A DNA stretch of 64,000 nt from Epiperipatus broadwayi (Eukaryota; Animalia; Onychophora): contig JAQFVV010000005.1 of the NCBI GenBank assembly GCA_028023455.1, forward strand, positions 11,346,001 through 11,410,000, given 5' to 3'. Positions 1-61,440 of this stretch are shown one piece after another. The position numbers and the translations under genes are program-made. The stretch's first letter is position 1, and every line of letters starts with the position of its first letter. The notes under the pieces were generated by a model. The model was not told the origin of the DNA. It was given only the letters and a program-made list of their open reading frames with translations, and did no database searches.

Positions 1-2297
1 TCCAGTATATTGCTATTTTGATTTTCTGATTCCTTGCCTCTTCTATTACCTATTCTTCAGTTTAATAGTTTTCTACTTCTCAGAGTGTTATTTATTACTT
101 TGTAACCAGACTTAAAGTATTTATGAATATATTGTTTATGCTTTCAATACCTTCAAACTATTTTCTATATTTTTTTTTACCTCAGTTTAGAATTAAAACT
201 GCATTTTTGTTAGCATTAGTAGAGAAAGATAACTTCCTAAATATCTATTTAACAATTCTGGGGAATTCCCAATTGCAGTTTAGAAAATGTAAGTTATTAG
301 AACACTGTGCATTCACATATCAATGTGTATTTATGAGATTAAATTACATAAAAACTTGCTTAAGTTATTGGGTTTTTTTTCTATCAGTTCATTAAATTCT
401 AAATAATATATAGAAATTAATATTTTTTTGATTTTTTCAAAAGTAAAAGCTGCTTCATTATCCATTACAATCATTTCTTGAAAACTATATGTAATTTTTT
501 TCAATTTGAAGTGATCTTACCTACATTGATAATTATTATCTTATGATTTCTACCAAACATGAATATGAATTTATTACCATAAGAAAAACAATCCTATTTT
601 TTTGCCACGGTTTCAACATTTTCGATCATAAACATTATTTTTCAGGTAAGTTAGTTTTGTCATGACAATTCTCATATTTTTAATATATCTTTTGAAATGG
701 TGATTAAAGTCACCCATCTAACATATATATTTATCATTCATATAGTATATATTTTTCTTGAAAGGTTTTTTTTTTTTTTTGTATGTGTGTAATATTACAG
801 AATTCCTGTGTGATATAGAAATTGAGCTAGTGATCTAAAACTTTATTGATCCATCCCTAATTTTTTTCATTATAAAATATATTGAGTGATTTGTTGAACA
901 AGTAAACGTATTGAATTTATTAAATTATTTAATAATGTTCAAATATTTGCTATCAGGAAGTGAGGAAGAAAATGATATCATGTATCCTTCTATAAAATGC
1001 TACAATTTGTATGACAGCAACTGTGTAATTATAAGTGTTGACTGCTATTGGAAAAATCAACAGTCCACTTCCAGCAACAGTATTCTTTCAATTCAATAGA
1101 AAATTACTATAGATGACAACAGTAAAAGGAAAGAGATAGTTGGATGACCTTTTGTGAGAAATAGATAGCATATTAAGCCTGATGTGAAGATTATTGCTGG
1201 ACAAAGAAGGTGACACAAAATCATTTTGCCTTAATTATTCTTTCTTTCATTGTAAAATAATGGTTATATTGTGCTAAAATGCAGAATACAAGAAGCTATA
1301 ATAATAAAAAATATATAAAGGCTAAGCGCTTTCAGGAATATCTTGTTCCAATATTCATAGCATATGATGGAAATGTTGGTAAAACATTATGTCTAAACAT
1401 AGTGTATGCAATGTATTTAAATGGCCAATTTTTTAGAAATGGAAAAGCAGGATTCCTTCTTATTGATGGTGTTGGCATTATCTGCTATAAAGCATGCCTC
1501 TTTTACCTCACATTTTATATCGTTCTGCTCCATGCAAAGTATTTCTGCTGATGTGGGTGCAATTACTGACTATAAAAAATTATTATATAGTATTAACAAT
1601 TACAATCCATATACAGATGATTATTTTTGATTTTAACTGACAAATCAATTCAGTTTATAAATGCATGGTTACAAAAAAAATATAGGTTGCATGAAACAAT
1701 TTTTTTTTTTAATTGTGGAAAATACAAATTTTACCACACTGGTTTTCATCTTTTATTCATAGAAGTTGTCTTGTCTTGATAACAGATTGAAGATTGATTA
1801 CTGATGATATGCTTGGGTTATTATGATGTAATAAAGTTGTATGTACTAAATGAATGTATCCTTTATTATATTATTGTTTGTCAATTTATTAGATTGCAAA
1901 ATCTTGCTTTGCATCAAGTTTTTCTCCCAAATTTCTCTAAATTAATTATTTTTAAATATCTAAATTTTTGCAGCTCTATAATCCTTTGCCTTAATGTTTA
2001 TAATTTAAGATTATGTTATTAAAGAAATCTCATTTCTATGGCTGTTATATACACCATTAAAATTTTATAAATTTCATAGAAATTTGGTGGCTTATTTAAA
2101 TAAATATATATTTTACTGGTATAAATGGGAAAGCCAATAAACATCACATGACCACCATCTCTTATGCTTGTGTATAACTGTTGTTAAAACAGGAAAAACT
2201 CACTATACGTATTGCCACACACAGCAAGCCAGAGTAATCAATGGATGCCAGAAGGCATGTGCATAAAAATCCCCATCTAATGCCTACTCATCCAATA

Positions 2298-2339
2298 TCC
2301 CCAGACTAGTTTCTGGCTTGTGGCCTTCATCAGTGAGGA
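2298..2339 (-). ncRNA. Type I hammerhead ribozyme (family A), core intact
   Basis: Reverse complement reads UCCUCA CUGAUGA AGGC CACAA GCCA GAAA CUAG UC UGGGGA. Stem II is closed by an A.A mismatch. Confidence 0.8.
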
Positions 2340-2380
2340 GCCTTGGATCCTAAAATCTAGGTGGTGCTCAGATCCAAGGC

Positions 2381-2422
2381 TCCTCACTGACGAAGACCAC
2401 AAGCCAGAAACTAGTCTGGGGA
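2381..2422 (+). ncRNA. Type I hammerhead ribozyme (family A), N7=C, weakened stem II
   Basis: TCCTCA CTGACGA AGAC CACAA GCCA GAAA CTAG TC TGGGGA. Confidence 0.7.
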
Positions 2423-3189
2423 TATTGGATGAGCAGGCACTAGATGGGGATTTTATGCACAAGCCTTCTGGCATCCATTGATTACTCTAGCTTGCTGTGT
2501 GTGGCAATACATATAGTGAGTTTTGCCTGTTTTATAAATGGGAACAATGACAGTAACACCTATAGTTTAAAGAAAATTTAAATGAAATACAAGAAAACTC
2601 TTTGATAAACCTTATGAATTGAGGTGTCAAAAATAACAGTGTAGAATGCCCAAGAGATAGAGACTCTTTTAAATCAAATCCAAGATTTATAGAGTAAAAA
2701 CAAAACATTGCAGCAAAATAAACGAAAGACTCTGTTCATAGGTCTTGATTTCAAATTCCTAACTTATACCAATATAATTTAAATGAAATAAATAATAAAG
2801 GTAGGGAGCGAGGGGGCTATTATTTTCATTAATTCTTTTTCAATTTTTTTTTAGATATCAACTTAATAAAAATTATTTTTTAAAATAATAAATTCCTTTT
2901 CATCCCTGTACTTCCAGAGGCAATTATCTCTTCTCCTTAGACCTCGATTTTTCAAATGTGATTTTAATTTATTTTTTAAAATTTTTATTTACTTACTTAT
3001 TTTTCTTTACTTTTGAGGGAAATCCCCAGCAAGTTTTGGGGGAAAACATCATAATTTTAGTTATATTACTGCACTTAGAACCCATTCACAATATGGGGAC
3101 AACTCAATTTTTTACTTATTAATATTATCCGATGACCTTCATATTTGAAACAACTTTATTTTGCTTTTAATTCAATGTTTCAAATATAA

Positions 3190-6100
3190 TAATACATATT
3201 TTAAACGAATACAAACCAATGCAAGAAAGTTTCAATAGTGCTATCTGTATTTATCACTATGCAATGTCTAATACATATACAAATATAACATATGTCCAAC
3301 ATTAATAATGAGGCAAGAGGCAACAATGATCAGTGAATCCGAATGTTTTCACTATGGAAAGGGATCTGAATATAAATAATTTATTGGGAGGTAAGAGGAA
3401 ATAACTGTCAAGGCTGAATAACAGTACTCTGGTTAACTACTATATGATTAATGCAGTGAGGCAAGTTGACATCAGAACTGGAAGCTGCTATAATCTAAAT
3501 CAGACATGAGGCAAGCTGTCATAGTACAGCCAGAAGTGTCACCATACCTTCTAATGATGCAGCCTGTCACACTACAGCTGGAAGGGGTAGGTAAACTTAT
3601 AAGGCATCAGAAATCCCTTCTTCCTATAGTTGCATGGCAACTAGAAGCTATACCTTATCAATGGTAGCAGATGGAAGTATAGCCATTTGCATATTCATTT
3701 AAAGTTATGTTAATAAATTTATGTTGTAAACATTTCAGTGTACCTGTTTTATATTAATTTACACATAAACACCACAGATTTGTCACAGTTGACAGGATAA
3801 CAAAAAAAATCAAAGGCTTGAAAAAAGTTTCAAATGACAAAGTCTTACCTCTGTGGATCATTAGATCCTTACCTTTAATCTCAAAAATTGACGTCTAACA
3901 TTAACATTATTAATACTTCAATAAAAAAAAATTAAAATCAAATGTGAGAGGTTATTTGTTAAAATAATAAAAGCAGAATCTCCCCCCATGGGTTGTTTAG
4001 ATCTGTGAATTAAAAATTGTTGGCAAACATTATTAGCACATCAATAGAGAGAAAAAAAATCATGAGTGGTTACTTGTATATTATTAAATAGAACAGATAT
4101 ATTTTTTTCTCTCATGGCAGAAAAGCAAAAATCAAATGGCTAAAATGGGATGAATGGAAGAGTTTAATACAGCCTATCCTGAAGATTGGCCAAGCTACAA
4201 GAATCGAGTATTTTTCTATACGCAGGCTAATCAAATCAAAAACCTGATCTAAAATTAGCCATTCTGGTTTCAGTCATCAGATCTCAAATATATGAGACTC
4301 AAATCATAGGAAGTCCTCATGCTTGTTGTCTCTACTGACTAACTTTTACTGCCCAAATCCCTTAATAATAATGCAAAGCTATCACTTCAAGATTTTGCTG
4401 TTAAAATCAAAAAACTATCCCTAAAATGTGATTTTAAAGTTTTCACCTATGAAGCACTGAAAGATCAATTTATTTGTGGAATGTGAGACCATAACTTAGG
4501 GTCGAGCTTTTTGTGGATTCTGATATCATTTTTGACTCAGTTTTCTCTCAAGTGGCCTCTACAATGAAGCAAGCAAGTCCTTTGAAAAAAATGGTCTATA
4601 TCATTAAAATTGTTGATCAGAAAACTGGTTCAGACAACTACCCAGCTGACAATAAAAAAAAAAGCCTGAATAAATTGTCAACAATGAATAAAAAAACATT
4701 ATTATATATGTGATCAATCAAAAGTGCAAGCACTGACTGTCCTTATCAGAATACAGTGGGTAGATATTAGTCACACAAAAGCTGCTTGTTTTAAAAGAAA
4801 ATAAGTTGCTAATAACAAAATGGAAGAGTCCATTCCAAAAAGCCATAAAGGCAAGATAAAATCAAATTATATTAATGCTTGTATAAACAATGTGAGAGGT
4901 ATTGACTCTGGTTTCAAATACAGAATTATTATTAATGATATGCCAATAACAGTGAAACATGACATTTGTCTGCAGTATCTATTGTCAAAAAAAATATATA
5001 TATATCAGCTACATCCTAGCAGCAAAACAATTGTTGATTACCAAGGCAATCAAATAGCACTCTTGGGTGAGACAAGAGTTAAAGTTACAATGTCTAATAA
5101 AACTATATATCTGGCTCTGATTATGTCTGTTAGTAAGCAGAGTAATTTGTTAGGTCATGACAGGTTCAATCACTTGTGCCTTGCAGTGGCTAAAGTGAAC
5201 CAATTCACAAAAGTAAATTTTAAATGAGTTTATCCAGAAGTACTTGTTAATAAATCAGATTTGAACTTTGAAATAAGTCATGAAAGTGAGAAATAGCAAT
5301 ATTAAAGTGCAGAAGTCCCATGTCACATGAATAGAAAAACCACTAAATGTTTTCCAGCAGTGATGATCAAAATTAAAAAATCATAAACAATGATAGTTCA
5401 AAAATGCATAGCAACAACATAGACACACAAACAAGCTGTTAAATTATGAAAAGTCATGAGTTATCAGTAAAGAGTCACCATCCAACAGTGATAAGATCAC
5501 CAGTCAGCAGTGATGAATCTACATAATTAAAGATTTCCAGATGTACCAATAAATACCCTAGACTTGTTGATGAAGTCATCAAACCTGACGAAGCCAGATA
5601 ATAATGAAGATGTCCACCAAAGCATCTGAATGATGTTTATCATGACTACTTTTAGTTACGAAAGGGAGAAAATGTCATATCTTATCTTAAACATTAAATA
5701 ATGAACTAGTGCAAATTCAATCTTATCTTGATTGGATTAGGTATTCATCACCACAGATCAACATATATACAAATAGATAACATACATCCAAGGTCAATAA
5801 TGGACCAATAGGTGATGATGTTCAATGAATCTGATTGTTTACATTATGGATGGGGATCTGGCATTAAGTAGTCAATCCATTAGGAGGTCAGGGGAGACAA
5901 CTGTCAAAGCTGAATGATAGTATGCTGGTTGTCCACTATACAGTTAAAGCAGTGAAGCAAATCTACATCAGGACTGGAAATGTCACTGTATTAATCATGA
6001 GATCGGCTGTCAGAGTACAATTGGAAATGGTAGGTAAACTTATAAGGTCACCCAAAGTCCCTTCTTTCTATAGTTGCATGGCAACTAGAAGTTATACTTC

Positions 6101-6244
6101 ATCAATGGTAGCAGGTGGAGGTGTAACTGTTGTATATAGTGTAAATATGCAATTGTATATTTATTTAATGTTACGCTAATAAATATATACTATAAACGTA
6201 TTTCCACATGTCTGTTTTATATTAATTTGCACATAAACATAACA
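3190..6244 (+). mobile_element. Old, internally deleted Ty3/Gypsy LTR retrotransposon (both LTRs, gag and protease relics, pol mostly missing)
   Basis: Diverged direct repeats ~3190-3776 and 5673-6244; the 3' copy is TG...CA and follows the polypurine tract AAAGGGAGAAAA. Gag-like MEEFNTAYPEDWPSYKNRVFFYTQAN from 4154 and KCDF...EALKDQFICGM at ~4420-4480. Protease-like ORF 4820-5227 ends SNLLGHDRF. Confidence 0.8.
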
Positions 6245-15989: not shown

Positions 15990-16460
15990 TTTTAATTAAA
16001 TAAATGCATTTATGAAAATGAAAAAAAAAAGTTCAAATTTTGCTTATATGATTTTAAAACTATACAGATAAATTACAATTTCATAAAAGAAATCATTTTG
16101 GACAAAAAGTATTTTGGTGCAATCTCTGTGTTTGAGTAAAATATATTTTTAAAATTTTTGAAAGAATGTGAGAAAAGTCTTCCCACTGTGATTTCTATAC
16201 TTATAAAAGTATTGCAATTTATAAATGAAACTTCATGAAAAATCACAAGAAAAAATCTTTTCCATTACAATTTTTGTCATTTTAAGACTGTTGGAAAATG
16301 TAGATTAAAAATATATTTAAAACAGAAAAACCTTTTCGATTGCAGCTCATGTGATTATAAACTGCTGCAGAACATTATTTTTTAAAAAAACATAGGAAAT
16401 TGCATTCAGATTATAAGTATTTTATGAGATTATAAGGCTGCTGGGAAAAATAAACTAGTT
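15990..16460 (+). pseudogene. Decayed upstream C2H2 zinc-finger repeats contiguous with the ZF ORF
   Basis: Frameshifted finger-like pieces (e.g. TTCCATTACAATTTTTGTCATTTTAAGACT, TGCAGCTCATGTGATTATAA) at finger spacing, interrupted by stops. Confidence 0.65.
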
Positions 16461-17657
16461 ATGCATGAAAAAACTTATATTAGAGAAAAATCTTTTCAAT
16501 GTAATTTTTGTGGTTTTAAAACTGCTCATAATAGTTATTTAAAAATACATGAAAAATCACATATAGGCAAAAAGCATTTTAATTATAGCTTATATGATTA
16601 TAAGAAGGCTGCAAAATCTAATTTAAAGTCATATGAAAATATACATAAAAGGGAAAAAACTTTCCACTGTACTATCTGTGACTATAAGACTACTATTAAA
16701 AGCAATTATAATACCCATGAAAGAACCCATACTGGAGAAAAACCTTTTCATTGCAAGTTATGTGATTATAAAACTACTCAAAATAGTAATTTAAAAATAC
16801 ATGAAAGTACACATACTGGAGAAAAATCTTTTCAGTGCAACTTATGTAATTACAGGACTGCAAGAAAATCCAGTTTAAAAAGGCATATAGAAATACATAC
16901 AAGAAATCGCAGCCTTTATGATTATCAGACTGCTACAAAAGCTAATTTAAAAAAATGTGAAAATATACATACAGAGAAAAAAAATTTCTACTGTACAGTA
17001 TGTGATTATAAGACCACTATTAAAAGCAATTTATATACACATGAGAGAACACATACAGGAGACAAACCGTTCCATTGCAAATTTTGTGATTATAAAACTA
17101 CTCAAAATAGTAATTTAAAAATACATGAAAGTACACATAATGGTGAAAAATCTTTTCATTGTGGCTTTTGTGACTACAGCACTGCCAGAAAACCCAGTTT
17201 GAGAAGACATGTAAAAATGCATACAAGAAAAATGTTTTTCCATTGTACCATGTGTGCATATAAGACTTCTGTAAAAAGTAGACTAAATATGCATGAAAGA
17301 AGAACACATACTAGAGAAAAACCTTTTCATTGTAGATGGTGTGATTATAAAACAGTGAGGAGTTGTAATTTAAAAGTACACGAGCAAACACATTCTGGAG
17401 AAAATTTTTACTTGTGCAGTTTATGTGATTCTCATAATACTTTAATAAAAGATAAAAAGTGTATTCATATAAATGATTCTTTGAAGTTTGATCAAAATAA
17501 ACAAAGAAAATACATTTCTGAAGATTCTCAAGATACTGAAATGTTTAAATGTCATTTTTGTGACTACCAAAGCACAGAAAAGAATCTTTGGGAAATCCAT
17601 ATAGCCAGTCATTTTACTGATAATGATATAATTGAAATCCTTATACGATTTACTTGA
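16461..17657 (+). CDS. Tandem C2H2 zinc-finger protein (10 intact and ~3 degenerate fingers); may be one exon or a partly decayed gene
   Basis: 398-aa open frame in AT-rich DNA with repeated CxxC-DYKT...HxxxH fingers and TGEKPF-type linkers. True start is uncertain. Confidence 0.85.
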   Translation: MHEKTYIREKSFQCNFCGFKTAHNSYLKIHEKSHIGKKHFNYSLYDYKKAAKSNLKSYENIHKREKTFHCTICDYKTTIKSNYNTHERTHTGEKPFHCKLCDYKTTQNSNLKIHESTHTGEKSFQCNLCNYRTARKSSLKRHIEIHTRNRSLYDYQTATKANLKKCENIHTEKKNFYCTVCDYKTTIKSNLYTHERTHTGDKPFHCKFCDYKTTQNSNLKIHESTHNGEKSFHCGFCDYSTARKPSLRRHVKMHTRKMFFHCTMCAYKTSVKSRLNMHERRTHTREKPFHCRWCDYKTVRSCNLKVHEQTHSGENFYLCSLCDSHNTLIKDKKCIHINDSLKFDQNKQRKYISEDSQDTEMFKCHFCDYQSTEKNLWEIHIASHFTDNDIIEILIRFT

Positions 17658-23060: not shown

Positions 23061-23103
23061 ATAAATATTAAGTCAATTTAAAGTACAATAAAATTTTATA
23101 CTT

Positions 23104-24395: not shown

Positions 24396-25744
24396 GGCAC
24401 CAATTTAGAGTTCACACTCTGCCATTTTAAATTGTAAGGACTTCCCAAAACCACTGCTGACACATCCAAATGATAAATGACATCGAATAATCTACATGTG
24501 TTTGCAATATGACCATTCATTACAAAATCACAATTTACATCAGTAATTAAAAAATTAAAGTGCAAATTTCATAGCTTGATCAAATCACATGACTAAAATA
24601 TACAGAATATAAAAAATGGGAGGAATGAATAAATTTCAAAATACTGAAAGCTTATAATTTCTAAAATACTTAAAAAGTGAATGAAAAAAAATAATGAACA
24701 TATATATTAATTAAAAAAAAAGGAAAGCTTTGTATCATCAAAAACATCTCCCTTTCTGTATACTTCAGCACAAAGCACCATCATTAACAAATTTTGTTAC
24801 AATATATGTCCATAACCACATGTTAAATAAACAAATTGATCCAATCACACTTATAATTTCGAAATACTAAAAGCTTATAACTTCTAAAATACAAATTTTA
24901 TTATAATATAGGTCCCTAACCACATGTTGAAATAAGGTAAATATTGAATAAATGTATTAACAACTGCCGAAGCATATTAATTCTACAATTAGTGATAAAT
25001 CACATTTTATCTTAACATTAGCTGAAAGAATAATTGACTAAAGTAAAGAATATTAATTTTACAATTAATAAATCATATTTTTTCTTTACCAAAGCGAGTA
25101 CTGTTGTGTGCTCTATTTCTCACATATCATTAGGAAGAAAAAGATGAGAAAAAGTTAGCATTGTTCACATGTATCAATTTCAAGAGATTGTAAGGACCTC
25201 ACATGATCAAGTGTAAATCCAATATCCATGTCAGGAGATCAAATGTGAACAACACTATTTCTTTTTATCTCCATTTTTTTCCTAACTGCATGTAATAAAG
25301 AGAGCATGCAACATCAGTTTTTTCTGGTAAGAAAAAATGAGATTAATTGTAAAATTAATATACTTTCAACTTCTGTATTTTAGAAATTATAAGCTTAGAT
25401 TTGAAAAATATGGTTATAGGTATATATTGTTAAAAAAATTTGTATTTTAGAAGTTATAAGCTTTTAGTCTTTCAAATTTATACTCTTGATTTGATCAATT
25501 TTACATTTATTCAACATGTGGTTATAGGCATGTATTGTAATAAAATTTGCATTTTAGAAGTTATAAGCTTCTAGTATTTCAAAATTATAGGCTTGGTTTG
25601 ATCGAACTGATTTACAGTGCGCTCTCCACCATTTTGAATTCTAAGGACTGCCCAAAATGTCATTTATCGCTTGGATGTGTCAATGGTGGTTTTGGGCAGT
25701 CCTTAGAATTCAAAATAGAGGAGAGTGCACTCTAACTCAGCACC
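24396..25744. mobile_element. Foldback/MITE-like element with ~80-bp TIRs and nested inverted sub-repeats
   Basis: 24404-24482 is inverted at 25658-25735. Sub-repeats containing AAGCTTATAACTTCTAAAATAC (24640-24900) are mirrored at 25370-25590. Inner mirror ~25060-25350. Confidence 0.75.
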
Positions 25745-25960
25745 ATAATTTCTGCAAAAGAGAAATTATTAAACATTATTTTCCATATCCTAAAAGAAAA
25801 CAATAATACTAAAATAAAATGTACAAAATTCTTAAATAAAATAACTACTAACAAAAAATATATAATGCACTACAAAACAAATAATTTAAATTCACCAAAA
25901 ACCATAGTCAACACTGAAAATTAAATACCACCAAATGCTATACTAATAATGCTAAATAAA

Positions 25961-39719: not shown

Positions 39720-40850
39720 CTGTTAGGTACGTATAGAGGAATTTATGTATGAATATGTAAAGCCTTTTACAAACAAGTTTATAAAAATAACAAGAAAGAA
39801 GAAAACTTTAGAATTAAATAAAAAGTGAGGTTATTCTATTACTGTTCAATACAGTATATATATATATAATTCATTTTGCTACTATATGTCTTTTCCCATC
39901 TAATTGTCATGCTTTAGATTTAAGGGATTAGATCATTGAGGTTGGAGTTTTGTCTTAGTTTGAATTTATAAGAACTGAAAAAATTCAAAAATGAATTTTA
40001 TCATTATCTTTCTCATTTATTTATTATGTAATTTATTCTTTAAACATATATTTGAAATTATTGAGTATTGTTTATTGAAGCATATAAAAGATCTTACACC
40101 ACAGTGTTAGCAAGTACCACTTTCTTATTTACGAGTGTGCATTGATAATAATATTTTATATGAGAGTTGCTAGTTAAATGAATTTGAACTTAAATAATTT
40201 ATGTTTTGAAGATGCTTTCTACATTGAATTTTAAAAAGAGCAATTTAGAAATGCAATAAAAATACTGTTAGCCTGCCACTAGGATGCTCCAATGACAAAT
40301 CATATCCCAAGCAACTATATTTATACACATTTTTACAGTAAACATATAATTCTGTAATAATAGTGTAATAAATGTAATATTTGGCTGCTGAATAAACATC
40401 ATTGTAAAATTACATTGTATGTTGGGATTTTTTGGGATAAAAAAATAATAAAATGTTTGTGGTGACTATAAACCATAATCAATTACTTGATATCTTTTCA
40501 AATACAATTTTAATCAAAGAAGCTTGTCTGTGATTGTGTATTTTTGAATCATACATGTTGTATTATTATGTATCTTTCAAATGGTAGACATCAGATATTG
40601 GCTAAAGTATGTTTGATCTTTTCTATACCTTATTCTATTTTTTAGAAATGTAAAGACATCTTCCTTTCTTTATGTCACCAATCAAATATTTTTGTTCTTA
40701 TTCTCCTTTAAAATTGTTTTTAACTTGTTTTCTTCTAATTCAATTTAATTTCTTAACTTTTTACTAATTTATTTACTAATTTTTCTTGTTTACTGTTTAA
40801 ATTTATTCATTCTGAAAGTTGACAACCTGCTGATCTTCATGTGTGTGCTC
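39720..40850 (+). mobile_element. Probable Gypsy 3' LTR, paralogous to 59682-61600
   Basis: Starts TGTTA after a purine-rich tract. Colinear by eye with 59682-60400 plus 61146-61600. Right boundary is uncertain. Confidence 0.5.
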
Positions 40851-42391
40851 TTTAGGTTACTATAGAAATTGATATCTTCTATAAATGAATAAAATATAGG
40901 ATGATCTGGAAGAAGAAATTAAGAGATTTGTAACTATTGCAGCCATAAAAATTATCTGAATAATGATTGCAGTATCTTAAATATCTTTAATAAAAGTTGT
41001 TTGATTTACAATAGGGTTTGAAACAAGGTAACCATAATATATTTAGAATGCATTTTATCAAGAATCAATGTAAATTCAGGAATTTTAAGATGATGTACTT
41101 TATTAAAAGAATAGTGAGTTTCCTAAAATTACAGTTATGTTATCATTGTGTTAAAATAATTAATTTATATAGAATCTCCATTTTTGATTTTGACATTCTC
41201 TCAAGGCTAATTTGAAATAATTTTGTGTTTCCTTGGTAAAAGTAAAATCATTATGTAGAGAGTACATCTTATACTTGAAGTTCCATGGTTGCCAATAGTA
41301 TTATGTAATTGTTTTTTTAATTTCAAGAGCCTAATTGTGTGTTTTCATAATTTCAATTCTTTAACCATGAGTTCATCAAAATGAAGTCTGGTTTTTATGT
41401 GGAGACAATTTGCTTCAACTCACAAAGTGAATCATGGGAAAGCTGCCAATCCATTTGTCTATAATTATATATTAGTACAGTGTGCTTACAAAAAATAAGA
41501 GATTGTAGCACGTTTAGTTTCTGTGAGTTGCAGAAAAAAATATCTTCTAACATTAATTATCAAATTAAAACAAAATTATGTAAATATATTTTTTGGAATT
41601 TAAGTAACATTTAGCCATTTCTCTTACTTAATCTCTGTGTATTTTTGATAATCTTTTTTAGAAATAAAATTTTATGAAAAGTATCTTTAAATCTAAAATA
41701 AATTTTAAATTTATCAATTGGACCATTTTATTTTATTTATATGGTCTCTCAACATTAAATGCTTTAAATGTATGTTAATCATTGTCTAATATATGAATAA
41801 AATTTTATTTTCAATATCAATTCATTTGTCAGCTAATATCAATAAGCAGTTACTAATTTCTTGGACTTTTTAAAAAAAATTCTCAGAATGCATAAATAAA
41901 AGTGTTGTGAGGGTCTTTAAACTGAATTGCTAAACTTGGCTGAATGGATTTTAACATAATTTTATTGACATGAAATCTATAATATATGTTTGCACATAGT
42001 TTCAAATGTATCGGAATCACATTTGAATTTTCTTAATATTTTTTTAAAGCAATGTTTCTGCAATGGCTCATTCAAATTTAAATATTTATTAATTGAATTA
42101 ATAACATATGGGAAGAAGTAACTTTTGTTATATATTAGTTTATTTTTTAATAAAAATTACTTCTTCCATTTGGAATGTTGATTCAATTCATAAGTACTGT
42201 ATTTAAATTTGAATGAGATGTTAAAGAAATATTGCTTTAATAATAATTATTCTATAATTTCTTATCAATTATTATATTGTTTTCTTTAGGTTATGAGTAA
42301 TTCACTTCTAATCACCAAGATTATATTTGTAAAACAAATTAAATTGCATGCTATATAAGTATACCTTCATTGATTCATTAGATTGGATTGT

Positions 42392-42485
42392 AATTAAACA
42401 GGCAAAATTCTCCATACAGTAGTGCCACTCAGTGCAAGCCAGAGTAATCAATGAATGCCAGAAGAAACAGTGACCATGTGATGTT
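42392..42485. mobile_element. Family A mini-insertion (no HHR), first of two at the same 13-bp target
   Basis: TAGATTGGATTGT at 42379-42391 and 42486-42498. Minus arm plus a short plus arm ending GTGATGTT. Confidence 0.75.
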
Positions 42486-42611
42486 TAGATTGGATTGTAT
42501 TAAAATGGGCAAAACTCTCTATACGTATTGCCACTTAGTGAAAACCAGAGTAATCAATGGATGCCAAAAAGCTTTGCATAAAATCTCCAACTAGTGCCTA
42601 CTCATCCAATA

Positions 42612-42653
42612 TTCCCAGACTAGTTTTTGGCTTGTGGCCTTCATCAGTGAGGA
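42612..42653 (-). ncRNA. Family A hammerhead, G12A (predicted inactive)
   Basis: Core CUGAUGA is intact but GAAA reads AAAA. Confidence 0.6.
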
Positions 42654-43330
42654 GCCTTGGATCTGAGAGCATTGCATCTAGATCTTAGGATCTAAAACAA
42701 CCCTCCAGCAGCCATCTTTTATTTCTATTTAACTACAAAATTATGAGTCTTAAATTGAAAACATCATGCTATTTTCAATCCAAGCTCATTAGCTTATGTA
42801 GTCATATAGTTCTGAATTCAGTTCAGTACTTATACATTTTGGTGTCTTTGGTTCTTTAATAACCATAGCCACCACTATCCTATTAGGCAGAATTGCTCTT
42901 AAGCCAATAAACATCATATTTCACCATTTCTTATGCCTGCTTATAACTTATTAAAACAGGAAAAACTCTTTATATGTATTGCCACTCACTGCAAGCCAGA
43001 GTAATCAATGGATGCCAGAAGGCTTAATAATAACAGTTATAAGCAAGCATAAGAAATGATGATCATGTGATGTTTATTGGCTTAAAACCAATCCTATCTA
43101 ATAGGATAGTGGTGGCTATGGTTATTAAAGAACCAAAGACACCAAAATGTATAGGTACTGAACTGAGTTCAGATCTATATGACTATATAAGCTAATGAGC
43201 TTGGATTGAAAATATTACAGTGTTTTCAATTTAAGACTCATAGTTTTGTAGTTAAGTTGAGATAAAAGGTGGCTGCTGTAGGGTTGCATTAGATCCTAAG
43301 ATCTAGGTGCAGTGCTCTCAGATCCAAGGC

Positions 43331-43372
43331 TCCTCACTGATAAAGGCCACAAGCCAGAAACTAGTCTGGGAA
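43331..43372 (+). ncRNA. Family A hammerhead, G8A (predicted inactive)
   Basis: TCCTCA CTGATAA AGGC CACAA GCCA GAAA CTAG TC TGGGAA. Confidence 0.6.
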
Positions 43373-45129
43373 TATTGGATGATTAGGCACTAGATGGGGA
43401 TTTTATGCACAAGCCTTTTGGCATCCATTGATTACTCTGGCTTTCACTGAGTGGCAATGCATATAGATAGTTTTGCCTGTTTTAATAACAGTTAAATGTT
43501 GATTATGTTATCTAGATTGGATTGTGGTAGGTAATGCAGCCACAATTTGACATTTAAAGATATTAGCTATCTTAATTATAATTTACAAACAATAAACAAA
43601 TTTAAATATACACCTAATTCAATAATCAAAACAAATATATAACTGTCATTTGATTAGAGGAAACCATTATTATTGCAATCAATAAAGTAACTGTAATTCT
43701 GTTTAAATGATGACTTCTGATTATTATATGGAAAAAAAAAATTATAAATTGAGAATTCAGTGAAATGTTATTTCCAATATAATAATAACTATCAAAGTTA
43801 ATATAAAATGCAAAGTACCCAGAACTGATAAATTAGATTGCATCTCTGAAAAAACCCAATATTGAAAATAATAGACAATCAAATAATTTGATTTTAAAAT
43901 CTGAATTAATATAAAAAAGTTAGTGAATGGAATACATTTTAAAAAATTATATTGAGATATCTATATGTATAAATGAATCCTAACAGACTTGTAAAAAGTA
44001 TTATAAGTTGGCAGTGTAAGATATACAGATTGGATTTAATTTATATTATTTTTTAGAAAGCAATAAATGATATAATAAAAGAAAGTGAAGATAAATGATT
44101 ATTACAAAAAGGCTGGAAGCTTGAACATTTTAACCTATTATTTAAATCACAGGATAAAGTTAAAACCTGCTCTGGAAAGGAAAAATGGAAATCAAGCTAC
44201 TAATAAACTCAAAAACAATCATGAATATTGGTTTAGCTGTCAATTTTGATTTTAGTCACTGTTTCAACTGCTGAAAATAGATTTTTTGTACTTTATATAA
44301 ATAATAGAATTTATTTTGCATTGAATGGTTTAATTGTTGAGAATCCATCCAATTTGAAAGTATTATTTGATAAAAAAAAAGTGCAACAAGAAAAAAAGGA
44401 AGATATTTTTATTGTCATTAATAATTGTAAATTAATTTATTTGATTTATATAGATTAATAATCTAAATCCTTTGTAATAAAGTTCAAGGAATCAATATTA
44501 GTGACAATGAAACAACTATGAGCTAAAACTTGTTTTAGTTTAATATGATTGATAAATTTTTTATTGCAGTTAAGTACTAGTTTAAAATCTATTTAGTTTG
44601 TTTATAGACAAATCTTTGTTTTAAAAAAATACTTACATTCTTGAAAAAAATTCACATAAAAATAGTGTCTTGTTTAAACTAGTTAAAAATTATTAAATAG
44701 GAGGACATAGCAAAAGTTTAAAATGTCTGTCATATATTTGACAGTTCTTTTTAGAAAAAAAAAAACAACAAGATATCAAGACAATATTTCATGAGGAAAA
44801 AAAAGTTAGTGATCGTAATGTGAATGAATGTGTCCTTATTAATTATCTCCTATGAGATGGTCATTTTAATTTGAGAATAAAAAAATTGATATACAACAAT
44901 AAAAAGTTTAAAAAAAGTTTTATCATGAGTGCAAAGAAGCCCATGAATCACAAAACTATTCACATTTATTACTTGCTTTTTCTCACGATAAGATTGTTTT
45001 AAAATGTTTTTTGAGATAATAAACAAATTCATCAAATAAATAGTGGGAATTATTTACTTATAGTCATTTAAAGTATACAAAAAAAATGTAAGAAATCAAA
45101 GCTGCAGAAGTAATATTTTATGAAATGAT

Positions 45130-45640
45130 TTTTTTTCTGGAGAAAAGATTTACAAATATGACAGAAATAATCTCATTTGAAGAGCATGAAAGATCGTGAA
45201 AAGTTTTTGAATGCATCTTTTATTATTACAAGGGTGCTATAAAAAATGGATTAAATAATCACAAAAATTCAAGCAAAAAAACTGTAATTGCACTTTAGGT
45301 GTTTTCAAGACTGTTTCCAAAAAAAAAAAAAAAGATTAAATATGCCTAAGTACTGAAGAAAAAGCATTCCATTGTAAATTGTGTGATTAGAAAGCTGCTC
45401 AAAAATTTAATTTAAAAGTATACCATACAGGGAAGAAATCTTTTAGCTATAACATGTGTGATTACAAAGCTTGCAAAAACTTACTTGAAAATACATGAAC
45501 TCATAAGAAAAGATATGTCATTGTACTTTATGTAATTATAAGACTGCACTAAAAAGTAGTATAAATAAACATAAAATAATATATACTGGAGAAAAACCTT
45601 TCCACTGCAGACTTTGCAAATTTAAAAGTGTTGACAAAAT
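45130..45640 (+). pseudogene. C2H2 zinc-finger pseudogene resembling the 16.5-kb gene
   Basis: Finger remnants: FHCKLCD* (~45368), CTLCNYKTALKSSINKH (~45523) and YTGEKPFHCRLCKFK (~45582), with stops and frameshifts. Confidence 0.75.
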
Positions 45641-46443: not shown

Positions 46444-46810
46444 AAAGAATCACTTTTTTGACACGTTTTTCAATATACGTGGCCACAGAGTTTATTTTCT
46501 TTCAATCACATGATTACACATATGAAAAGGCCTCCTATCTTTTCTTCATTACAGGAATAATAGCCAAGTTTTCAGCAATTGTCAAATATAAAGAAGCCAA
46601 AATAATAGCAATCCAAGTAGATTTTGGGAAAAAAAAAGTTTTTGCAACTGACAAATATAAATAAAGCAAAACAACACCAATCAAAGCAGGTTTTGAAAAA
46701 AAGAATCACGTTTTTCAATATACATAGCAGTGTTTATTTTCTTTCAGTCACAAGATTACACATGTGAAAAGGCCTCCTACCTTCTCTTTGTTGCAGGTAT
46801 AGTACACAAG
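46444..46810. repeat. Pair of ~110-bp diverged direct repeats
   Basis: AAGAATCAC...TTTATTTTCTTTCA.TCACA.GATTACACAT.TGAAAAGGCCTCCTA at ~46446-46560 and ~46700-46800. Confidence 0.6.
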
Positions 46811-47335
46811 TATCATAAATTTATATACACGTAACCTCTCACATTTCTTGTTTACCACAATTAATATTTATTTTTAGTTCTAAGATTTTTTTATATCTGT
46901 CTGACCTCAGCAGGATATAAGAAAAAGAGTATATATGCTAACATCAGACACGGTAGTCATGTGGCTATTGTCCTCGGAGCATAGGTAATGAGGTTCAACT
47001 TTGTATTTTTTAAGGTAATATTTTTAAATATGTTACACACAGACATGCTATTTAGTGATCATTGCTTTGTTCTTAAGATTAGTTTTGCTGACTATATAAA
47101 TCTGACCATTACAGTAGTTATTATTTGTTTATTTTATTACGATATATTGGATCATATAGAGTTTACTTCAAAGTATTTTGATTATATATATGAAGTTAAG
47201 TTTAAATATCTTTTAAAATAATGTCTATATGAAGTTAATTTGTAATATGTTCTATAAGGCTTAAAATATGCAAAACTCTCTATACGTATTGCCACTCAGT
47301 GCAAGCCAGAGTAATCAATAGATGCCAGAAGGTAT

Positions 47336-47377
47336 CCCCCAGACTAGTTTCTGGCTTGTGGCCTTCATCAGTGAAGA
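47336..47377 (-). ncRNA. Type I hammerhead ribozyme (family A), core intact, G.U-rich stem I
   Basis: Reverse complement UCUUCA CUGAUGA AGGC CACAA GCCA GAAA CUAG UC UGGGGG. Confidence 0.7.
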
Positions 47378-47791
47378 GCCTTGGATTTGATAGCACTGCA
47401 CCTAGATCTTAGGATCTAATGCAATACTCCAGCGGCCACCTTTTATCTCTACTTAACTACAAAACTATGAGTCTTAAACTGAAAACACTATAATATTTTC
47501 AATCCAAACTCAGTAGCTTATATAATCATATAGATCTGAATTCAGTTCAGTACCTATACATTTTGGGGTCTTATGTTCTTTAGGGTCTTTGGTTCTTTAA
47601 TTTTATTAGGCAGGATTGGTTTTAAGCCAATAAACATCATATGAACCCCATTTCTTATGCTTGCTCATAACTGTTATTAAAACAGGCAAAACTCTCTATA
47701 CATACTGCCACTCAGTGCAAGCCAGAGTAATCAATGGATGCCAGAAGGCTTGTGCATAAAATCCCCATCTAGTCCCCCCCCCCATCCAATA

Positions 47792-47828
47792 ACCCCAGAC
47801 TAGTTTCTGGCTTGTGGCCTTTATCAGT
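47792..47828 (-). ncRNA. Family A hammerhead, G8A and truncated at the inversion junction
   Basis: CUGAUAA core; the 5' strand of stem I is lost at 47828. Confidence 0.5.
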
Positions 47829-47903
47829 AGTTGAGATAAAAGGTGGCTGCTGGAGGGTTGCATTAGATCCTAAGATCTAGGTGCAGTGCTCTCTGATCCA
47901 AGC

Positions 47904-47944
47904 TCTTCACTGATGAAGGCACAAGCCAGTAACTACTCTGGGGA
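47904..47944 (+). ncRNA. Family A hammerhead, degenerate (GUAA, broken palindrome)
   Basis: TCTTCA CTGATGA AGGC ACAA GCCA GTAA CTAC TC TGGGGA. Confidence 0.5.
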
Positions 47945-49699
47945 TATTGGATGAGTAGACACTAGATGGGGATTTTATGCACAAGTCTTCTGGCATCCAT
48001 TGTTTACTCTGGTTTGCACTGAGTGGCAATACATATAGAGAGTTTAGCCTGTTTTAATAACAGTTATGAGCAAGCATAAGAAATGGTGATCATGTGATGT
48101 TTATTGGCTTAAAACCAATCTTGCCTAATAGGATAGTGGTGGCTATGGTTATTAAAAAACCAAAGACACCAAAATGTATAGGTACTGAACTAAGTTCAGA
48201 CCTAAATGATTATATAAGCTCAGTAGCTTGGATTCAAAATATTAGAGAGAGTTTTGCCTGTTTTAACAACAGTTATGAGCAAGCATAAGAAATGGTGATC
48301 GTATGATGTTTATTGGCTTCTATAAGGCTTACTTGAAATTGTGTTTCAAATTACTAACGTACCAAAATAATGGAATGCCACTTCCATTTTTGAAAAATTA
48401 CTGACAAACCAATCAAAAAATTAATTATAAAATATTAAAATAAATGTAAAAAAAAATAGTAGGGGGTTGCTGGCTGGTTGATATGATTGAGATAAAGATC
48501 AGAGATGCATTTATAAAAACTTGTAAATATATAGATGCTTCTGATTATTGAAATAACGATTTATATATATAAATTTTTGGTGCAACTTTTAATTACATAA
48601 ATTTTGACAATGGCGGAATTCGATTGGATTTAATGGCTCATACTGTTGGCCCTGATTGTATTTTTAAGTTTATTCAGAGTAAAATATCTTGATACAGAAA
48701 GTATTATATAATTAATTTTTGATTGCAAAATAATAAAATTAAACTTAAATAATGTATATAAAATTTTAATTTTGGATTAATAATATATTTTCGCTGTGAT
48801 ATTACTTTCCCCCAAGAATCTTTAATATTAATTTTATTTTATAATAGATGGCGCAACAGATTTTCTTTGTGCGAAATGCTTAATAATAGTGAAAAAAACT
48901 GGCTAACTCGAAATAATTTTCGAAACAAATCGAACCCAAACAAATTTCTGGTTAGTATAAATTCTTTTTAGAAAGCTAGGCAACGTTTATTGCCTATCTT
49001 ATTTATTATTAGAAGGTGCGTGCGTGTATGTTTTCTCCTACAGAAATGATATAATATGGTTGCTGTCAATGTAACGTTTTTATGAAATATTTATTTTTTA
49101 TGAAATATTTCTAAGCTCAAAATCATTTATTATTAATTGGAGCACTTTTTTTAGAAATTATGTATGGTTCTAAATGAAACGGATATTTGAGAGATGTTTT
49201 GTGAAAAGCAGATAACACATTTAAATGTAGAATGGTTAATAAAAGAAACTACGTTTTAAACATTTATTTTAATCAAATATTACTTGTTTTATTATTCCAT
49301 TTTATTATTCTTTATAAAGTATTCGATTTTCAGCCATTAATAAAATTTTATACTTTTCCAGAACTAAGTAAAAGCTGTATTGTTATTTTCTATTGTATCT
49401 TAATCATTAATTGTTAGATATGGTCTATAATTTTAATTGTAATTTATCCAAGGTCAACTATAATATATATATGGCAGCAGTTTAAATAAACAAACAACAA
49501 AAATTTAATAATATCAAGAGTTTATTTTAGTAGGAATAACTAATATTAATAGATAGGATTAGTAGATCAACTGGTTGATTTGCTAGTTGAACACAATATC
49601 AGTCTTGATCACGTATCAGTTCATATCTCTGTAGATAAGTAATATATACATAGGAAGCCAGCTGTTAACCCTGTCAAAAAAATGACTAAATTATCTTCT

Positions 49700-54980: not shown

Positions 54981-55022
54981 CCAATATATGTATTGCATGC
55001 TGAACCAGCACTTGTTAGTTGG
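54981..55022 (-). ncRNA. Family B hammerhead, decayed
   Basis: Reverse complement CCAA CUAACAA GUGC UGGUUCA GCAU GCAA UACA UA UAUUGG. Stem II is identical to the 33037 copy. Confidence 0.45.
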
Positions 55023-56319
55023 TTCAGATCACCATCTCCCACACATATATATATATATTTTAGAACTGTTCCAAATATTCTGTTTTATTGTATTTGATTT
55101 AGTATATATATTTTTCTATAATATCAATTTTATGTGTGTGTTTTCTGTGTATACATAAATTCAGTTGTGCTTTTCAAACAAAAAAATAATAACACAGACA
55201 CACATATTTTATATATACATTGATCAATAAAATCTGTTCAGAAGACATCTTTAAATATTTTTTTAAAATATATATTCTCTTAGGCAGAACTATGAAAGAC
55301 TTTTACATTTCTATTTCGATCATGTTATCTGCTATCTTACCAAGAATAATGGTGGATTTATTATATTTAACTAGAAAAGAAAGCCAATAAATTTTTTAGT
55401 TTTTTGCCTATATTAATTATTTATAATAGTAAATATTAGGTTACAGTAGAAATGGTGACAAATAAATTGAGAATGTGCCACATATACTGACACAACCCTA
55501 TCATTTTGAATCTAATCAGCTGAGAAAGCAGTATAGCAGTTAAAATATATAATGAATAAAAATGAAATGAATGATATATATGATGTTATACTCAGTTCAT
55601 CAGCATATAGTGTCATCAATGGCTATCTATAGTTAAAAGTTTATCACTTATTAATAGTCAAAATTTAGAATCAAAAAAATGCAAATAGATTAACAATGAT
55701 GATAAAATTGGGGGTAGTGTGAAAAATCTATTTTCAAAATTAAATTTATTTTTTTCAGAAATATTGTTTTAGGAAAAATTAAAAATGGAAAGGAGTATAG
55801 ATAACATAGCAATCATCTTCTGCACAGCAAAGTAACTGAAACCCAGTCAAGGGAAGAAAAAAATATGGAAAACCAGGTGTATTGATTAAAAATAATTCAC
55901 AAATTGAGGATTTAGAGGTTAAAAGAGTGAACAAATTACAATGAAAATAAGAAAATGCAAAAACAAATAATTGTTTAATATGTACCACATAGCAATGGTG
56001 CATTGAAATGAATACTTGAAAGAATATTGTGCCGACTACAGTGTTTGTAGTCACACATGTATACATAGTAGTCGAGGAATATTAAAAATGCAGAAGTAAA
56101 CCTATAATGAGAGGGTGGAAAAAGCATAATAATTAGCTAAAATTTCGTTAAAAGGTGAAACACAAAATGAAATTAAAGGAAGTAGGTCACTGATATTTTA
56201 AACAGAAAAAAAGGAAAATTAAACTTATAAAGTGATTAATGTTTAATTAAATCCTTTGTTTTAGAAAAAAAAATATAGAAAGAAGGGGGTATATAACAAA
56301 ATGCATCTTTTTTTATTAA

Positions 56320-59130: not shown

Positions 59131-59367
59131 TATATAAAGTAAATTGAGTCGGTTAAATTTTAATTTAAATAAAGAAAAGGGGAAAGATATTTTAAAGAAA
59201 CGGAAAGGTGATATAAACGAAAGAGGGGGGGGCTGTATATTCATGTACTCAGCTATTATTGGTGGTAATCGTCAAAAATTAATAAATATTCCAAGCGCTG
59301 GGTATCTAATAAAGCATTCTCAAGAATGTTTTTATCCAGCAGCCGAGGGGCATCTGATCGGGAAATG

Positions 59368-59614
59368 TAACGTTGGAGGAATATGTACATATTATTCCAG
59401 GGTTCGGTCAGGAATACAGACTTGAGAGCTAATTTAATCTGTATTTGCTTCTTGCTTGAGGTAACAGTAGAAATTAAATAATTAAATATAACGTTGGAGT
59501 AATATGTACATATTATTCCAGGGTTCGGTCAGGAATACAGACTTGAGAGCTAATTTAATCTGTATTTGCTTCTTGCTTGAGGTAACAGTAGAAATTAAAT
59601 AATTAAATATAACG
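59368..59614. repeat. Two-copy 121-bp tandem duplication containing a near-perfect 24-bp palindrome
   Basis: TAACG starts at 59368, 59489 and 59610. The copies differ at one base. Palindrome GGA(G)TAATATGTACATATTATTCC. Confidence 0.9.
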
Positions 59615-60564
59615 AAAACTGTTGCAATACATTATGGATTAAATTCACTTAACATATTATGTCTAGAACAAAAGAAGGGATCTGTTATATACAGAGAAAT
59701 TTATGTATGAATTAAAAAAGCCTATTCAATAACTAGTTTATAAAAATAATACACAGAAGGAATAAATCTTTAGAATTAAATAAATAAAAAGCAAGGCTGT
59801 TCTATTTTTGCATTTTACTGTTCAATATGTTATTCACCCTGTTGTTCTATGTCAGTTTTCCTATCTAATTCTTGTGCTTTAGTTTTAATTCTCTAATATT
59901 AAATGATGTACTGAAACCTAATGAAGATAATTTTAGATTTAGTTAACTTTTAAAGAATAAAGATCACTTGAGTTGGGAAGTTTGACTTAATTTGAACTTA
60001 TAAACATGAGAGAATTAAAAAATAAATATTTTTCTTATTCATTTATTAGGCAATTTATTCTTTAAGCATATAATTGAAATTGTTGAGTACCATTTACTGA
60101 ACTTCTTAGCAAATATCACTTTCTTATTTATGAATATGCATTGATAATATGTTAATATGAGAATTGCCATTTACAAAGCTATAAATTCAAGTATTTCATA
60201 TTTTAAAAGGGCCAGACAATTTGCTTTTTCCAAGCAACTTACTATGTATAAACATGTTTTTAAACAGAACATATAATACAGGTTAGTAATACTATAATAA
60301 TTTGGCAATAAGATAGCAGAATATGATTAAATTGTCATCACTAATAATTTTTTATTTTGGAGATGTGGTCAGATAAAAACATTAATAGTAGTAATATTAA
60401 ACCATCAAACATCACATGATCACCATCTCTATACTAGCACATAATTTGTTGTAAACAAAGGCAAAACTCCCCATACAGTAGTGCCACCTGTGCCAAACAG
60501 AGTAATCAATGGATGCCAGAAGGCTTGTGCATAAAATCCCTATCTAGTGCCTACTCATCCAATA

Positions 60565-60606
60565 TTCCCAGACTAGTTTCTGGCTTGTGGCCATCATCAC
60601 TGAGGA
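60565..60606 (-). ncRNA. Family A hammerhead, C3G (predicted impaired)
   Basis: Reverse complement UCCUCA GUGAUGA UGGC CACAA GCCA GAAA CUAG UC UGGGAA. Confidence 0.6.
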
Positions 60607-60978
60607 GCCTTGGATCTGAGAGCACTGCACCTAGATCTTAGGATCTAATGCAACCCTCCAGCAGCCACCTTTGTTTACAACAAATTATGTGCTAGTATAG
60701 AGATGGTGATCATGTGATGTTTGATGGTTTAACATCAATCCTGCCTAATAGTATAGTGGTGGCTATGGTTGTTTAAGAGCCAAAGACACCGAAATGTATG
60801 GGTGCTGAATTGAGTTCAGACCCATATGACTATATAAGCTATTGAGCTTAGATTGAAGATATTAACAATGTTTTCAATTTCATTCTCATAGTTTTGTAGT
60901 AAAGTAGAGTTAAAAGGTGGCTGCTGGAGGGTTGCATTAGATCCTAAGATCTAGGTGCAGTGCTCTCAGATCCAAGGC

Positions 60979-61020
60979 TCCTCACTGATGATGGCCACAA
61001 GCCAGAAACTAGTCTGGGGA
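60979..61020 (+). ncRNA. Type I hammerhead ribozyme (family A), best-formed copy; predicted cleavage after 61014
   Basis: TCCTCA CTGATGA TGGC CACAA GCCA GAAA CTAG TC TGGGGA: full core, 4-bp stem II, GUC triplet. Stem I extends via ATCCAA/TTGGGT, CTC/GAG, GTGC/GCAC and ATCTA/TAGAT. Confidence 0.88.
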
Positions 61021-61440
61021 TATTGGGTGAGTAGGCACTAGATAGGGATTTTATGCACAAGCCTTCTGGCATCCATTGATTACTCTGTTTGGCACAGGTG
61101 GTACTACTGTATGGGGAGTTTTGCCTTTGTTAGTAGTAATATTAATGATTGTAAATCAATAATCAAGAATTTGCATTTTTTCAAATACATTTTTAATCAA
61201 AGAAACTAAGTATATTATCATCATGCAAAGATGGATATTAGATATTGGTTTGAAGTTATCCCCTATATCTTATATATCTTATTCTATTTTTCAAACTTTC
61301 ATAGTCTCTTTTTCTTCTTAATATTGCCAAAAACTATTTTTTATATTTCTTAGAGTTTTCAGTCTTGTTTTTATCATTTCCTAAATGTCAAAGTTTCTTC
61401 CCCATTAAATATATTACTTAAAAAAAAAAAACAAAAGCAA

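Follow-up and report, generated by a model that had tools for sequence, protein, structure and literature searches.

Analysis of a 64,000-nt stretch of the onychophoran Epiperipatus broadwayi genome (assembly GCA_028023455.1, contig JAQFVV010000005.1, positions 11,346,001 to 11,410,000 of the forward strand; hereafter the window) uncovered seven insertions of a short repeat family, each consisting of a minus-sense arm fused to a plus-sense arm and drawn from a unit of ~454 nt that includes a hammerhead-like ribozyme motif. The family is likely a non-autonomous derivative of Penelope-like elements (PLEs), devoid of an open reading frame (ORF) and moved in trans through target-primed reverse transcription on both strands. 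The target-site duplications (TSDs), the arm structure, two classes of arm 3′ end, a template left uncut at the predicted ribozyme site and the ORF-less unit are read directly from the DNA. We favour a PLE derivative because every feature fits the published insertion anatomy of PLEs (PMC8557442) and the behaviour of a PLE protein in vitro (PMC11167929).

The whole window was searched with blastn, using one arm as query, and with an nhmmer profile built from four full units. These searches returned the seven insertions listed in Table 1 and no further family site or solo copy in the window; the boundaries agree with the start coordinates given in an initial annotation of the same DNA, and the minus-sense and plus-sense arms described there are present in all seven. 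Unit positions are numbered p1 to p454, where p1 is the base immediately 3′ of the predicted ribozyme cut (between GAAACUAGUC and UGGGG). The period was measured as 451 nt (42498 to 42949), 454 nt (reference arm) and 458 nt (right arm of insertion 7, 7R), exactly the range first reported, and a spacing of 416 nt in insertion 6 is due to a deletion. The family copies have no conserved ORF in common, in keeping with the earlier statement that the family carries no recognisable protein. The two arms of an insertion are mutually closest in insertion 7 (99% identity), the youngest copy, and in insertion 1 (95%), and identity between different insertions is 73–93%; the family is therefore old and divided into subfamilies, with at least one young insertion. 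Nucleotide composition in the window is AT-rich (GC 25–31%). The unit RNA folds into a rod far better than shuffled sequences (z = −4.9 and −5.8), and the hammerhead-like motif is embedded in this long rod.

Table 1 Insertions of the repeat family and Penelope-like sequences in the window. Unit positions (p) run 5′ to 3′ along each arm; strand is in brackets.
Feature	Position	Length	Structure	Central junction	Hammerhead-like motifs	Flanking duplication
Insertion 1	2132-2532	401 bp	tail arm 2132-2349 (-), p409->p171; no-tail arm 2350-2532 (+), p384->p118	p409/p384	2304-2333 (-) and 2387-2416 (+), both with intact core	12 bp, TATAAATGGGAA, 2120-2131 and 2533-2544
Insertion 2	25961-26152	192 bp	tail arm ~25961-26032 (-), p84->~p168; no-tail arm ~26030-26152 (+)	p84/p448		14 bp, 25947-25960 and 26153-26166
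Insertion 3	35953-36179	227 bp	tail-only arm ~35953-35996 (-), p115->~p168; no-tail arm 35994-36179 (+), p385->p116	p115/p385	36034-36063 (+), intact core, in no-tail arm	17 bp, 35936-35952 and 36180-36196, of which ~8 nt are microhomology with the tail end
Insertion 4	42393-42484	92 bp	no-tail arm ~42393-42464 (-), p49->p120; short tail arm ~42459-42484 (+)	p49/p136	none	15 bp
Insertion 5	42499-43512	1014 bp	no-tail arm 42499-43025 (-), unit plus ~75 nt; tail arm 43032-43512 (+), unit plus degenerate tail	p45/p120	42618-42647 (-), G12A; 43337-43366 (+), G8A	13 bp
Insertion 6	47264-48317	1054 bp	no-tail arm 47264-47828 (-), p424->...->p116, 1.3 units; tail arm 47829-48317 (+), p343->p308, then jump or deletion to p96->p171	p424/p343	47342-47371 (-), intact; 47798-47827 (-), G8A, without helix I 5′ strand; ~47910-47938 (+), mutated	14 bp, 47250-47263 and 48318-48331
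Insertion 7	60401-61130	730 bp	tail arm 60401-60672 (-), p353->p171; no-tail arm 60674-61130 (+), exactly one unit, p115->p116	p353/p115	60571-60600 (-), C3G; 60985-61014 (+), intact with U-A pair	15 bp, 60386-60400 and 61131-61145
PLE ORF remnant	62338-63243 (-)	301 aa	5′-truncated; C-terminal part of the reverse transcriptase plus GIY-YIG endonuclease with Cys/His residues
PLE inverted pair	63033-64000		head-to-head; self reverse-complement 84%; centre ~63516
Right PLE copy	ORF 63609-63959 (+)		reverse transcriptase YVDD motif; runs off the window end

All seven insertions are flanked by exact duplications. In 2000 random position pairs taken as a control, the longest match had a mode of 5 bp and reached 12 bp or more in only three. 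The 12–15-bp TSD length proposed initially applies to six insertions but not to insertion 3, whose 17-bp repeat is inflated by microhomology with the element end. Arm 3′ ends point outward and 5′ ends meet at the centre throughout. A further feature, absent from the initial annotation, is a one-sided tail: in seven of seven insertions one arm ends at p116–121 (...GUUUUGCCUGUUUU) and the other at p157–172 (...CAUGUGAUGUUUAUUGGCU), and the ~50 nt of tail duplicate the start of the next unit. If the ends chose their stop independently, this one-tail rule would arise by chance with a probability of at most 0.5^7 = 0.008. When all copies are oriented with the tail on the right, the left end reads as the TSD followed by (ATT)AAAACAGGCAAAAC... 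and the right end as ...CATGTGATGTTT(ATTGGCT) followed by the TSD. Microhomology of 3–8 nt between the target and the start site is found in four insertions. A small sense ORF (41–42 aa) that begins in the tail was rejected as coding because it is interrupted in the youngest copy. We make no claim for hairpins at the two reverse transcription start sites, where 80–90-nt folds are no better than those of shuffled sequences; at the distal start only a small hairpin is predicted, and its register differs between two subfamilies.

The central junctions, in comparison with these constant outer ends, differ in every insertion and carry either a 0–10-nt overlap or 1–6 nt of filler. Arm lengths range from 19 to 565 nt, and the 14 arm 5′ ends are scattered across the unit from p45 to p448, which amounts to variable 5′ truncation. 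Three arms, the left arms of insertions 5 and 6 (5L and 6L) and the right arm of insertion 6 (6R), are longer than one unit and re-enter the unit directly with no ORF in between, so that the template carried no ORF; arms 5R and 7R each span one unit. Three of the 14 arm 5′ ends fall at p115–120, against 0.18 expected (post hoc P ~0.001). Only one lies within 4 nt of the predicted cleavage site, i.e. there is no pile-up, and the arm 3′ ends are equally unrelated to its position. The no-tail arm of insertion 2 (2R) starts 0–6 nt upstream of that site and retains only the part of the motif 3′ of it; this start was rejected as a signal, ~0.3 such cases being expected among 14 arms. Nine arms span the ribozyme site uncut, and the template was therefore not a ribozyme-cleaved linear monomer.

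Insertions 4 and 5 are adjacent and in the same orientation but belong to different subfamilies, insertion 4 (whose tail arm has an internal deletion) being a sequence variant that resembles the insertion-7 subfamily. A 13-bp target, TAGATTGGATTGT, occurs three times (42379-42391, 42486-42498 and 43513-43525) and serves as a TSD common to both insertions. This arrangement points to two separate hits at the same staggered cuts, which implies either target specificity or homing beside an existing copy. At insertion 7, a diverged paralogue of the flanks at 40380-40540 (+), colinear with 60320-60400 plus 61146-61225, is ungapped at the insertion point and therefore serves as an empty site. The similarity extends further, in that 39670-40642 matches 59632-60300 plus 61146-61291 at 71–81% identity as a ~1-kb dispersed repeat or old duplication, the second copy of which is split by insertion 7.

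Ten hammerhead-like motifs are present across the family. The initial count of ten type I hammerheads thus stands as a number, with the qualification that five have an intact core, that insertion 4 is without a motif and that only the 3′ part of one remains in insertion 2. The five intact copies carry the full core CUGANGA...GAAA...UH (C3 U4 G5 A6 N7 G8 A9 ... G12 A13 A14 A15.1 ... U16.1 H17). The remaining five show a single inactivating-type core change or truncation, namely G8A (two copies, one also without the helix I 5′ strand), G12A, C3G, and A13U together with other changes. The predicted fold is of type I, with an open-ended helix I of 6 bp plus 4 bp past an internal loop and a helix II of three G-C pairs closed by a 5-nt loop. 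Helix III consists only of an A-U and a C-G pair around UA, which gives the 6-nt sequence ACUAGU; as this is a palindrome, two copies can pair into a dimer with an extended helix III.

A structural descriptor (core, helix I of at least 4 bp, helix II of at least 3 bp and a palindromic loop 3) gave five matches in the window, four of them in the family, and none in 200 first-order Markov simulations. Of the helix pair cells, 86% hold standard pairs in register, compared with at most 41% when slid. On this evidence a PLE-type hammerhead is a plausible prediction for the motif. Selective conservation of the ribozyme was considered and rejected: the major-allele frequency is 0.93–0.96 near the motif and 0.83–0.96 elsewhere in the unit, too flat a profile from too few copies. 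Rfam microRNA (miRNA) precursor models score the inverted-pair centres at 2293-2427 and 42868-43116 with E-values between 1e-8 and 1e-12, although none reaches its gathering score, and these matches are an artefact of long hairpins.

A second hammerhead-like motif, unrelated to the family, lies at 33041-33072 (-). It contains CUGAUGA, a 6-bp helix II, GAAA and the palindromic loop UGCA followed by UU, passes the descriptor, and has a sub-threshold full-length match to Rfam Hammerhead_1 (E 2.9). A paralogue with a degenerate core is found at 54988-55052. This motif suggests that the genome holds further PLE-related ribozyme repeats.

The right end of the window contains the remnant of a PLE in the same head-to-head arrangement as the small repeat family (Table 1). 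For the ORF at 62338-63243, an exhaustive HMMER search yielded 121 matches, the longest of which align at the C-termini of 800–970-aa proteins; two of these long matches carry Pfam RVT_1 and GIY-YIG domains, and the alignment spans their GIY-YIG segment. Searches of the same ORF against Pfam, PDB and a word-indexed protein collection gave no match, and the 1.2 kb following its stop codon yielded no hammerhead motif. The initial annotation had raised the possibility of a copy attached to a PLE ORF as its pseudo-long terminal repeat (pseudo-LTR), which the window does not bear out: the remnant is not joined to a unit and shares no detectable sequence with it. Insertion 7, at 1.2 kb the nearby copy, has its own TSD and an empty-site paralogue and is therefore not the pseudo-LTR of this PLE. 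The remnant is a candidate source of the machinery, in kind only.

According to PMC8557442, PLE insertions are 5′-truncated and partly tandem, frequently lie next to an inverted 5′-truncated copy, and have a tail at just one of their ends. A purified PLE protein prefers AT-rich targets, nicks and extends the two strands, and begins reverse transcription inside the RNA, at a pair of neighbouring sites on either side of the tail; it does not require cleavage by the ribozyme, and unprocessed RNA was the substrate in both the PLE assay and RNA-seq (PMC11167929). Mobilisation by PLEs, as suggested initially, is strengthened by the one-sided tail in seven of seven insertions, by arms longer than a unit and by the PLE reverse transcriptase/GIY-YIG remnant with its identical layout.

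For the enzyme involved, the succession of steps and a possible role of the ribozyme, we infer the following scheme. The element RNA would offer two reverse transcription start points, ~118 and ~170 nt downstream of the hammerhead-like motif. A PLE reverse transcriptase/GIY-YIG protein acting in trans would nick both strands of an AT-rich target in a staggered manner, and both target 3′-OH ends would then prime cDNA internally on the element RNA, one strand being extended from the distal start (which yields the tail) and the opposite strand from the proximal one. Extension would halt at variable points, after which the two cDNAs would be joined centrally with the observed 0–10-nt overlap or 1–6 nt of filler. 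The template would be an RNA that is unprocessed, multimeric or re-ligated. If it is active, the ribozyme probably works as a dimer through the ACUAGU palindrome, in a role that the insertions would not record. More tentatively, the insertions may be an in vivo record of an obligatorily coupled, asymmetric two-strand PLE integration, in which one target strand is always extended from the distal start and its partner from the proximal one, the template is uncut, and a preferred cDNA stop or RNA 5′ end coincides with the proximal start.

Several observations weigh against a PLE derivative with a hammerhead of this kind. The expected G10.1-C11.1 pair that closes helix II is replaced by A-A in eight of the ten motifs and by U-A in the other two, both in insertion 7. 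No double compensatory change occurs among the ten close copies, which therefore lend no covariation support. The initial annotation had looked to Rfam hammerhead models, and none of them (RF00163 and related) matches the family at E ≤ 10, intact copies included, in scans of the whole window at gathering score and of four sub-regions at E ≤ 10. These models are insensitive to such variants, as the unrelated motif at 33035-33078 scores only 12.7 bits. There is a precedent for a mismatch at the G10.1-C11.1 position: a retrozyme ribozyme from axolotl, in which U-U occupies the base of helix II, showed some self-cleavage in vitro, slightly above the Amex1 variant (6% per hour; PMC7229834). The tail of ~50 nt exceeds the 30–40 bp published for PLEs. 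The PLE remnant (62338-64000) has no detectable similarity to the unit, although it is 5′-truncated and its own 3′ end is undefined, and no autonomous PLE that shares the 3′ module of the unit was found in the window.

The evidence comes from seven insertions in a single window, and no copy of the family was found outside it in any collection searched. Two conserved 21–32-nt family patterns had no match in metagenome, viral and prokaryotic genome contigs, and a 46.7-kb Hydra vulgaris locus (GC 29.8%) contained neither family copies nor shared repeats. Exact-protein look-ups of the window ORFs and searches of the literature for family sequence strings likewise returned no match.

The alternative that survives best, though an unlikely one, is a classical metazoan non-LTR retrozyme, in which tandem transcripts cut themselves to ~454-nt monomers that are circularised and copied in rolling-circle fashion by a PLE reverse transcriptase. 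The three arms longer than one unit could come from such a circle, the unit RNA is as strongly self-paired as published retrozyme circles (PMC7761336), an intact circle would permit the nine arms that span the cleavage site, and internal starts require no free 3′ end (PMC11167929). This monomer route was part of the initial annotation and fares poorly here. No locus in the window has two complete same-sense ribozymes, and therefore no copy in it can release a monomer; two same-sense motifs occur only in arm 6L, where one of the pair has G8A and is without its helix I 5′ strand. Arm ends show no relation to the cleavage site, half of the cores are mutated, and the copies are dispersed inverted pairs instead of tandem arrays. 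The three arm 5′ ends at p115–120 point to a defined linear 5′ end or a strong stop and away from a circle, and unprocessed RNA was the substrate in the published PLE assay and RNA-seq (PMC11167929).

It is improbable that the insertions are truncated or solo pseudo-LTR copies of a full-length autonomous PLE, the unit being its pseudo-LTR and no separate family existing. Most dispersed minimal hammerheads are interpreted in this way (PMC4209133), and four of the seven insertions have arms shorter than one unit. Arms 5L, 6L and 6R, however, read upstream back into the unit and not into the 3′ end of an ORF, and arms 5R and 7R are exactly one unit. The separation of the PLE ORF remnant from any unit and the independent TSD and empty site of insertion 7 also speak against it.

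A palindromic foldback or miniature inverted-repeat transposable element (MITE) moving whole, with variable centres arising by later deletion in an unstable palindrome, can be dismissed as very improbable: it would suit the constant outer ends and variable centres, and the hairpin-driven miRNA-model matches show how software would read the family in that way, but TSD length is not fixed (12–17 bp), the termini differ by the one-sided ~50-nt extension and so are not terminal inverted repeats, arms differ in length and in some cases are longer than one unit, the centre would have to have suffered a large deletion seven times independently, there is no transposase, and dual-strand priming by a PLE protein has been shown in vitro (PMC11167929). 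The view first put forward, of retro-insertion as opposed to a cut-and-paste MITE, is upheld by the variable TSDs, by outer ends that are not mutual inverted repeats and by junctions that differ in every copy.

As a probable non-autonomous PLE derivative, the family is closest in its motif to the minimal hammerheads of PLE pseudo-LTRs, described together with dispersed truncated PLE copies by Cervera & de la Pena 2014 (PMC4209133). Both are of type I, with a 6-bp helix I, a helix III of A-U and C-G around a 2-nt loop and the sequence ACUAGU, and both occur as dispersed copies in opposite-strand pairs a few hundred bp apart with wide sequence variation; in Schistosoma, minimal hammerheads form opposite-strand pairs 100–700 bp apart (PMC4209133). 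The pseudo-LTR consensus keeps G10.1-C11.1 and one extra nucleotide 5′ of helix II, whereas the family has A-A or U-A between the core and the three G-C pairs, and its unit repeats without an ORF. Cleavage as dimers by hammerheads with a short helix III was reported by Lunse et al. 2017, as cited in PMC6765202.

Metazoan non-LTR retrozymes, as described by Cervera & de la Pena 2020 (PMC7229834) and in a preprint (10.64898/2026.07.22.740005), are likewise non-coding AT-rich units, a few hundred nt in length, that contain a type I hammerhead and have TSDs >4 bp; they too have a predicted rod-like RNA, co-occur with PLEs and have been proposed to originate from them. They are defined by same-sense tandem arrays and circular RNA, in contrast to the dispersed inverted pairs of the family. 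The searched passages of these two sources make no mention of a one-sided tail or an inverted-pair architecture.

In insertion architecture, the family shares 5′ truncation, partial tandems, an inverted copy, a tail at one end and AT-rich targets with the PLEs of Craig et al. 2021 (PMC8557442) and with PAc (Poseidon, Anolis; Frangieh et al. 2024, PMC11167929). PAc also has two reverse transcription starts roughly at least 100 nt downstream of the ribozyme cut and uses an uncut template. Unlike canonical PLEs and PAc, the family is without an ORF and has a tail of ~50 nt instead of 30–40 nt, and PAc started at non-homologous sites whereas four of the insertions here show 3–8 nt of target microhomology. 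Non-autonomous Chlamys PLEs such as MRC1 of Chlamydomonas (PMC8557442) are comparable as ORF-less PLE derivatives with pseudo-LTRs and multicopy insertions, but they belong to another PLE clade (with an N-terminal endonuclease) from a green alga and are mostly without hammerheads. Among the schistosome Sm-alpha/Sj-alpha elements, which resemble short interspersed elements, Sm-alpha is also a short non-coding retroposon with a hammerhead; in PMC6765202 it is described as a promoter followed by the hammerhead, in repetitive sequence, with no inverted-pair layout reported there.

L1 twin priming offers a further parallel, since there too a second priming event makes an inversion inside the TSD. 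In L1 the segment that becomes inverted derives from farther upstream in the RNA, and poly(A) is present at the opposite end. Both arms of the window family, in contrast, start from the same 3′ module and have no poly(A).

Minimal PLE hammerheads, dimer cleavage, metazoan retrozymes, the derivation of retrozymes from PLEs and non-autonomous PLEs are already published. The family is thus a clear new example of a described kind of element and not a new kind, and it leaves the current picture of these elements unchanged; what it adds, modestly, is an argument from architecture. According to a 2020 review, no conserved motif in metazoan retrozyme repeats betrays the autonomous element that mobilises them (PMC7761336), and a 2026 preprint (Li, Clavereau & Pollet, 10.64898/2026.07.22.740005) argues for PLEs from co-occurrence and pseudo-LTR similarity. 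The family adds another type of evidence for PLEs in the form of insertion scars: the inverted pair, one-sided tail, long variable TSD and arms longer than a unit. If the coupled, asymmetric two-strand integration proposed above held genome-wide, the family would define a minimal cis module for PLE mobilisation, ~170 nt in length and reaching from the ribozyme as far as the distal start, and would provide architectural evidence, independent of sequence similarity, that PLEs move ribozyme-bearing repeats in animals. The family also offers a compact natural substrate on which target-primed reverse transcription by PLEs can be studied, and annotation software will probably record it wrongly as a hairpin, a MITE or a miRNA locus.

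Other features of the window include a 398-aa ORF at 16461-17657 (+), in which an 84-nt periodicity at 16400-17420 corresponds to a C2H2 zinc-finger array (Pfam zf-H2C2_2, E 3e-53). Its protein matches are generic only, with a top identity of 46% to a PRDM9-like protein of Hydra vulgaris, and a related zinc-finger-like fragment lies at 45506-45609. At 59363-59604, a 121-nt unit is tandemly duplicated with 98% identity. Short direct-repeat pairs are found at 3611-3681 and 6055-6125 (89% identity) and at 46486-46569 and 46728-46811 (85%). Just upstream of insertion 2, a 113-nt inverted-repeat pair (24829-24941 and 25500-25612, 81% complementary) occurs near a 66-nt direct repeat (25431-25496 and 25538-25603); the inverted pair may be another small mobile element.

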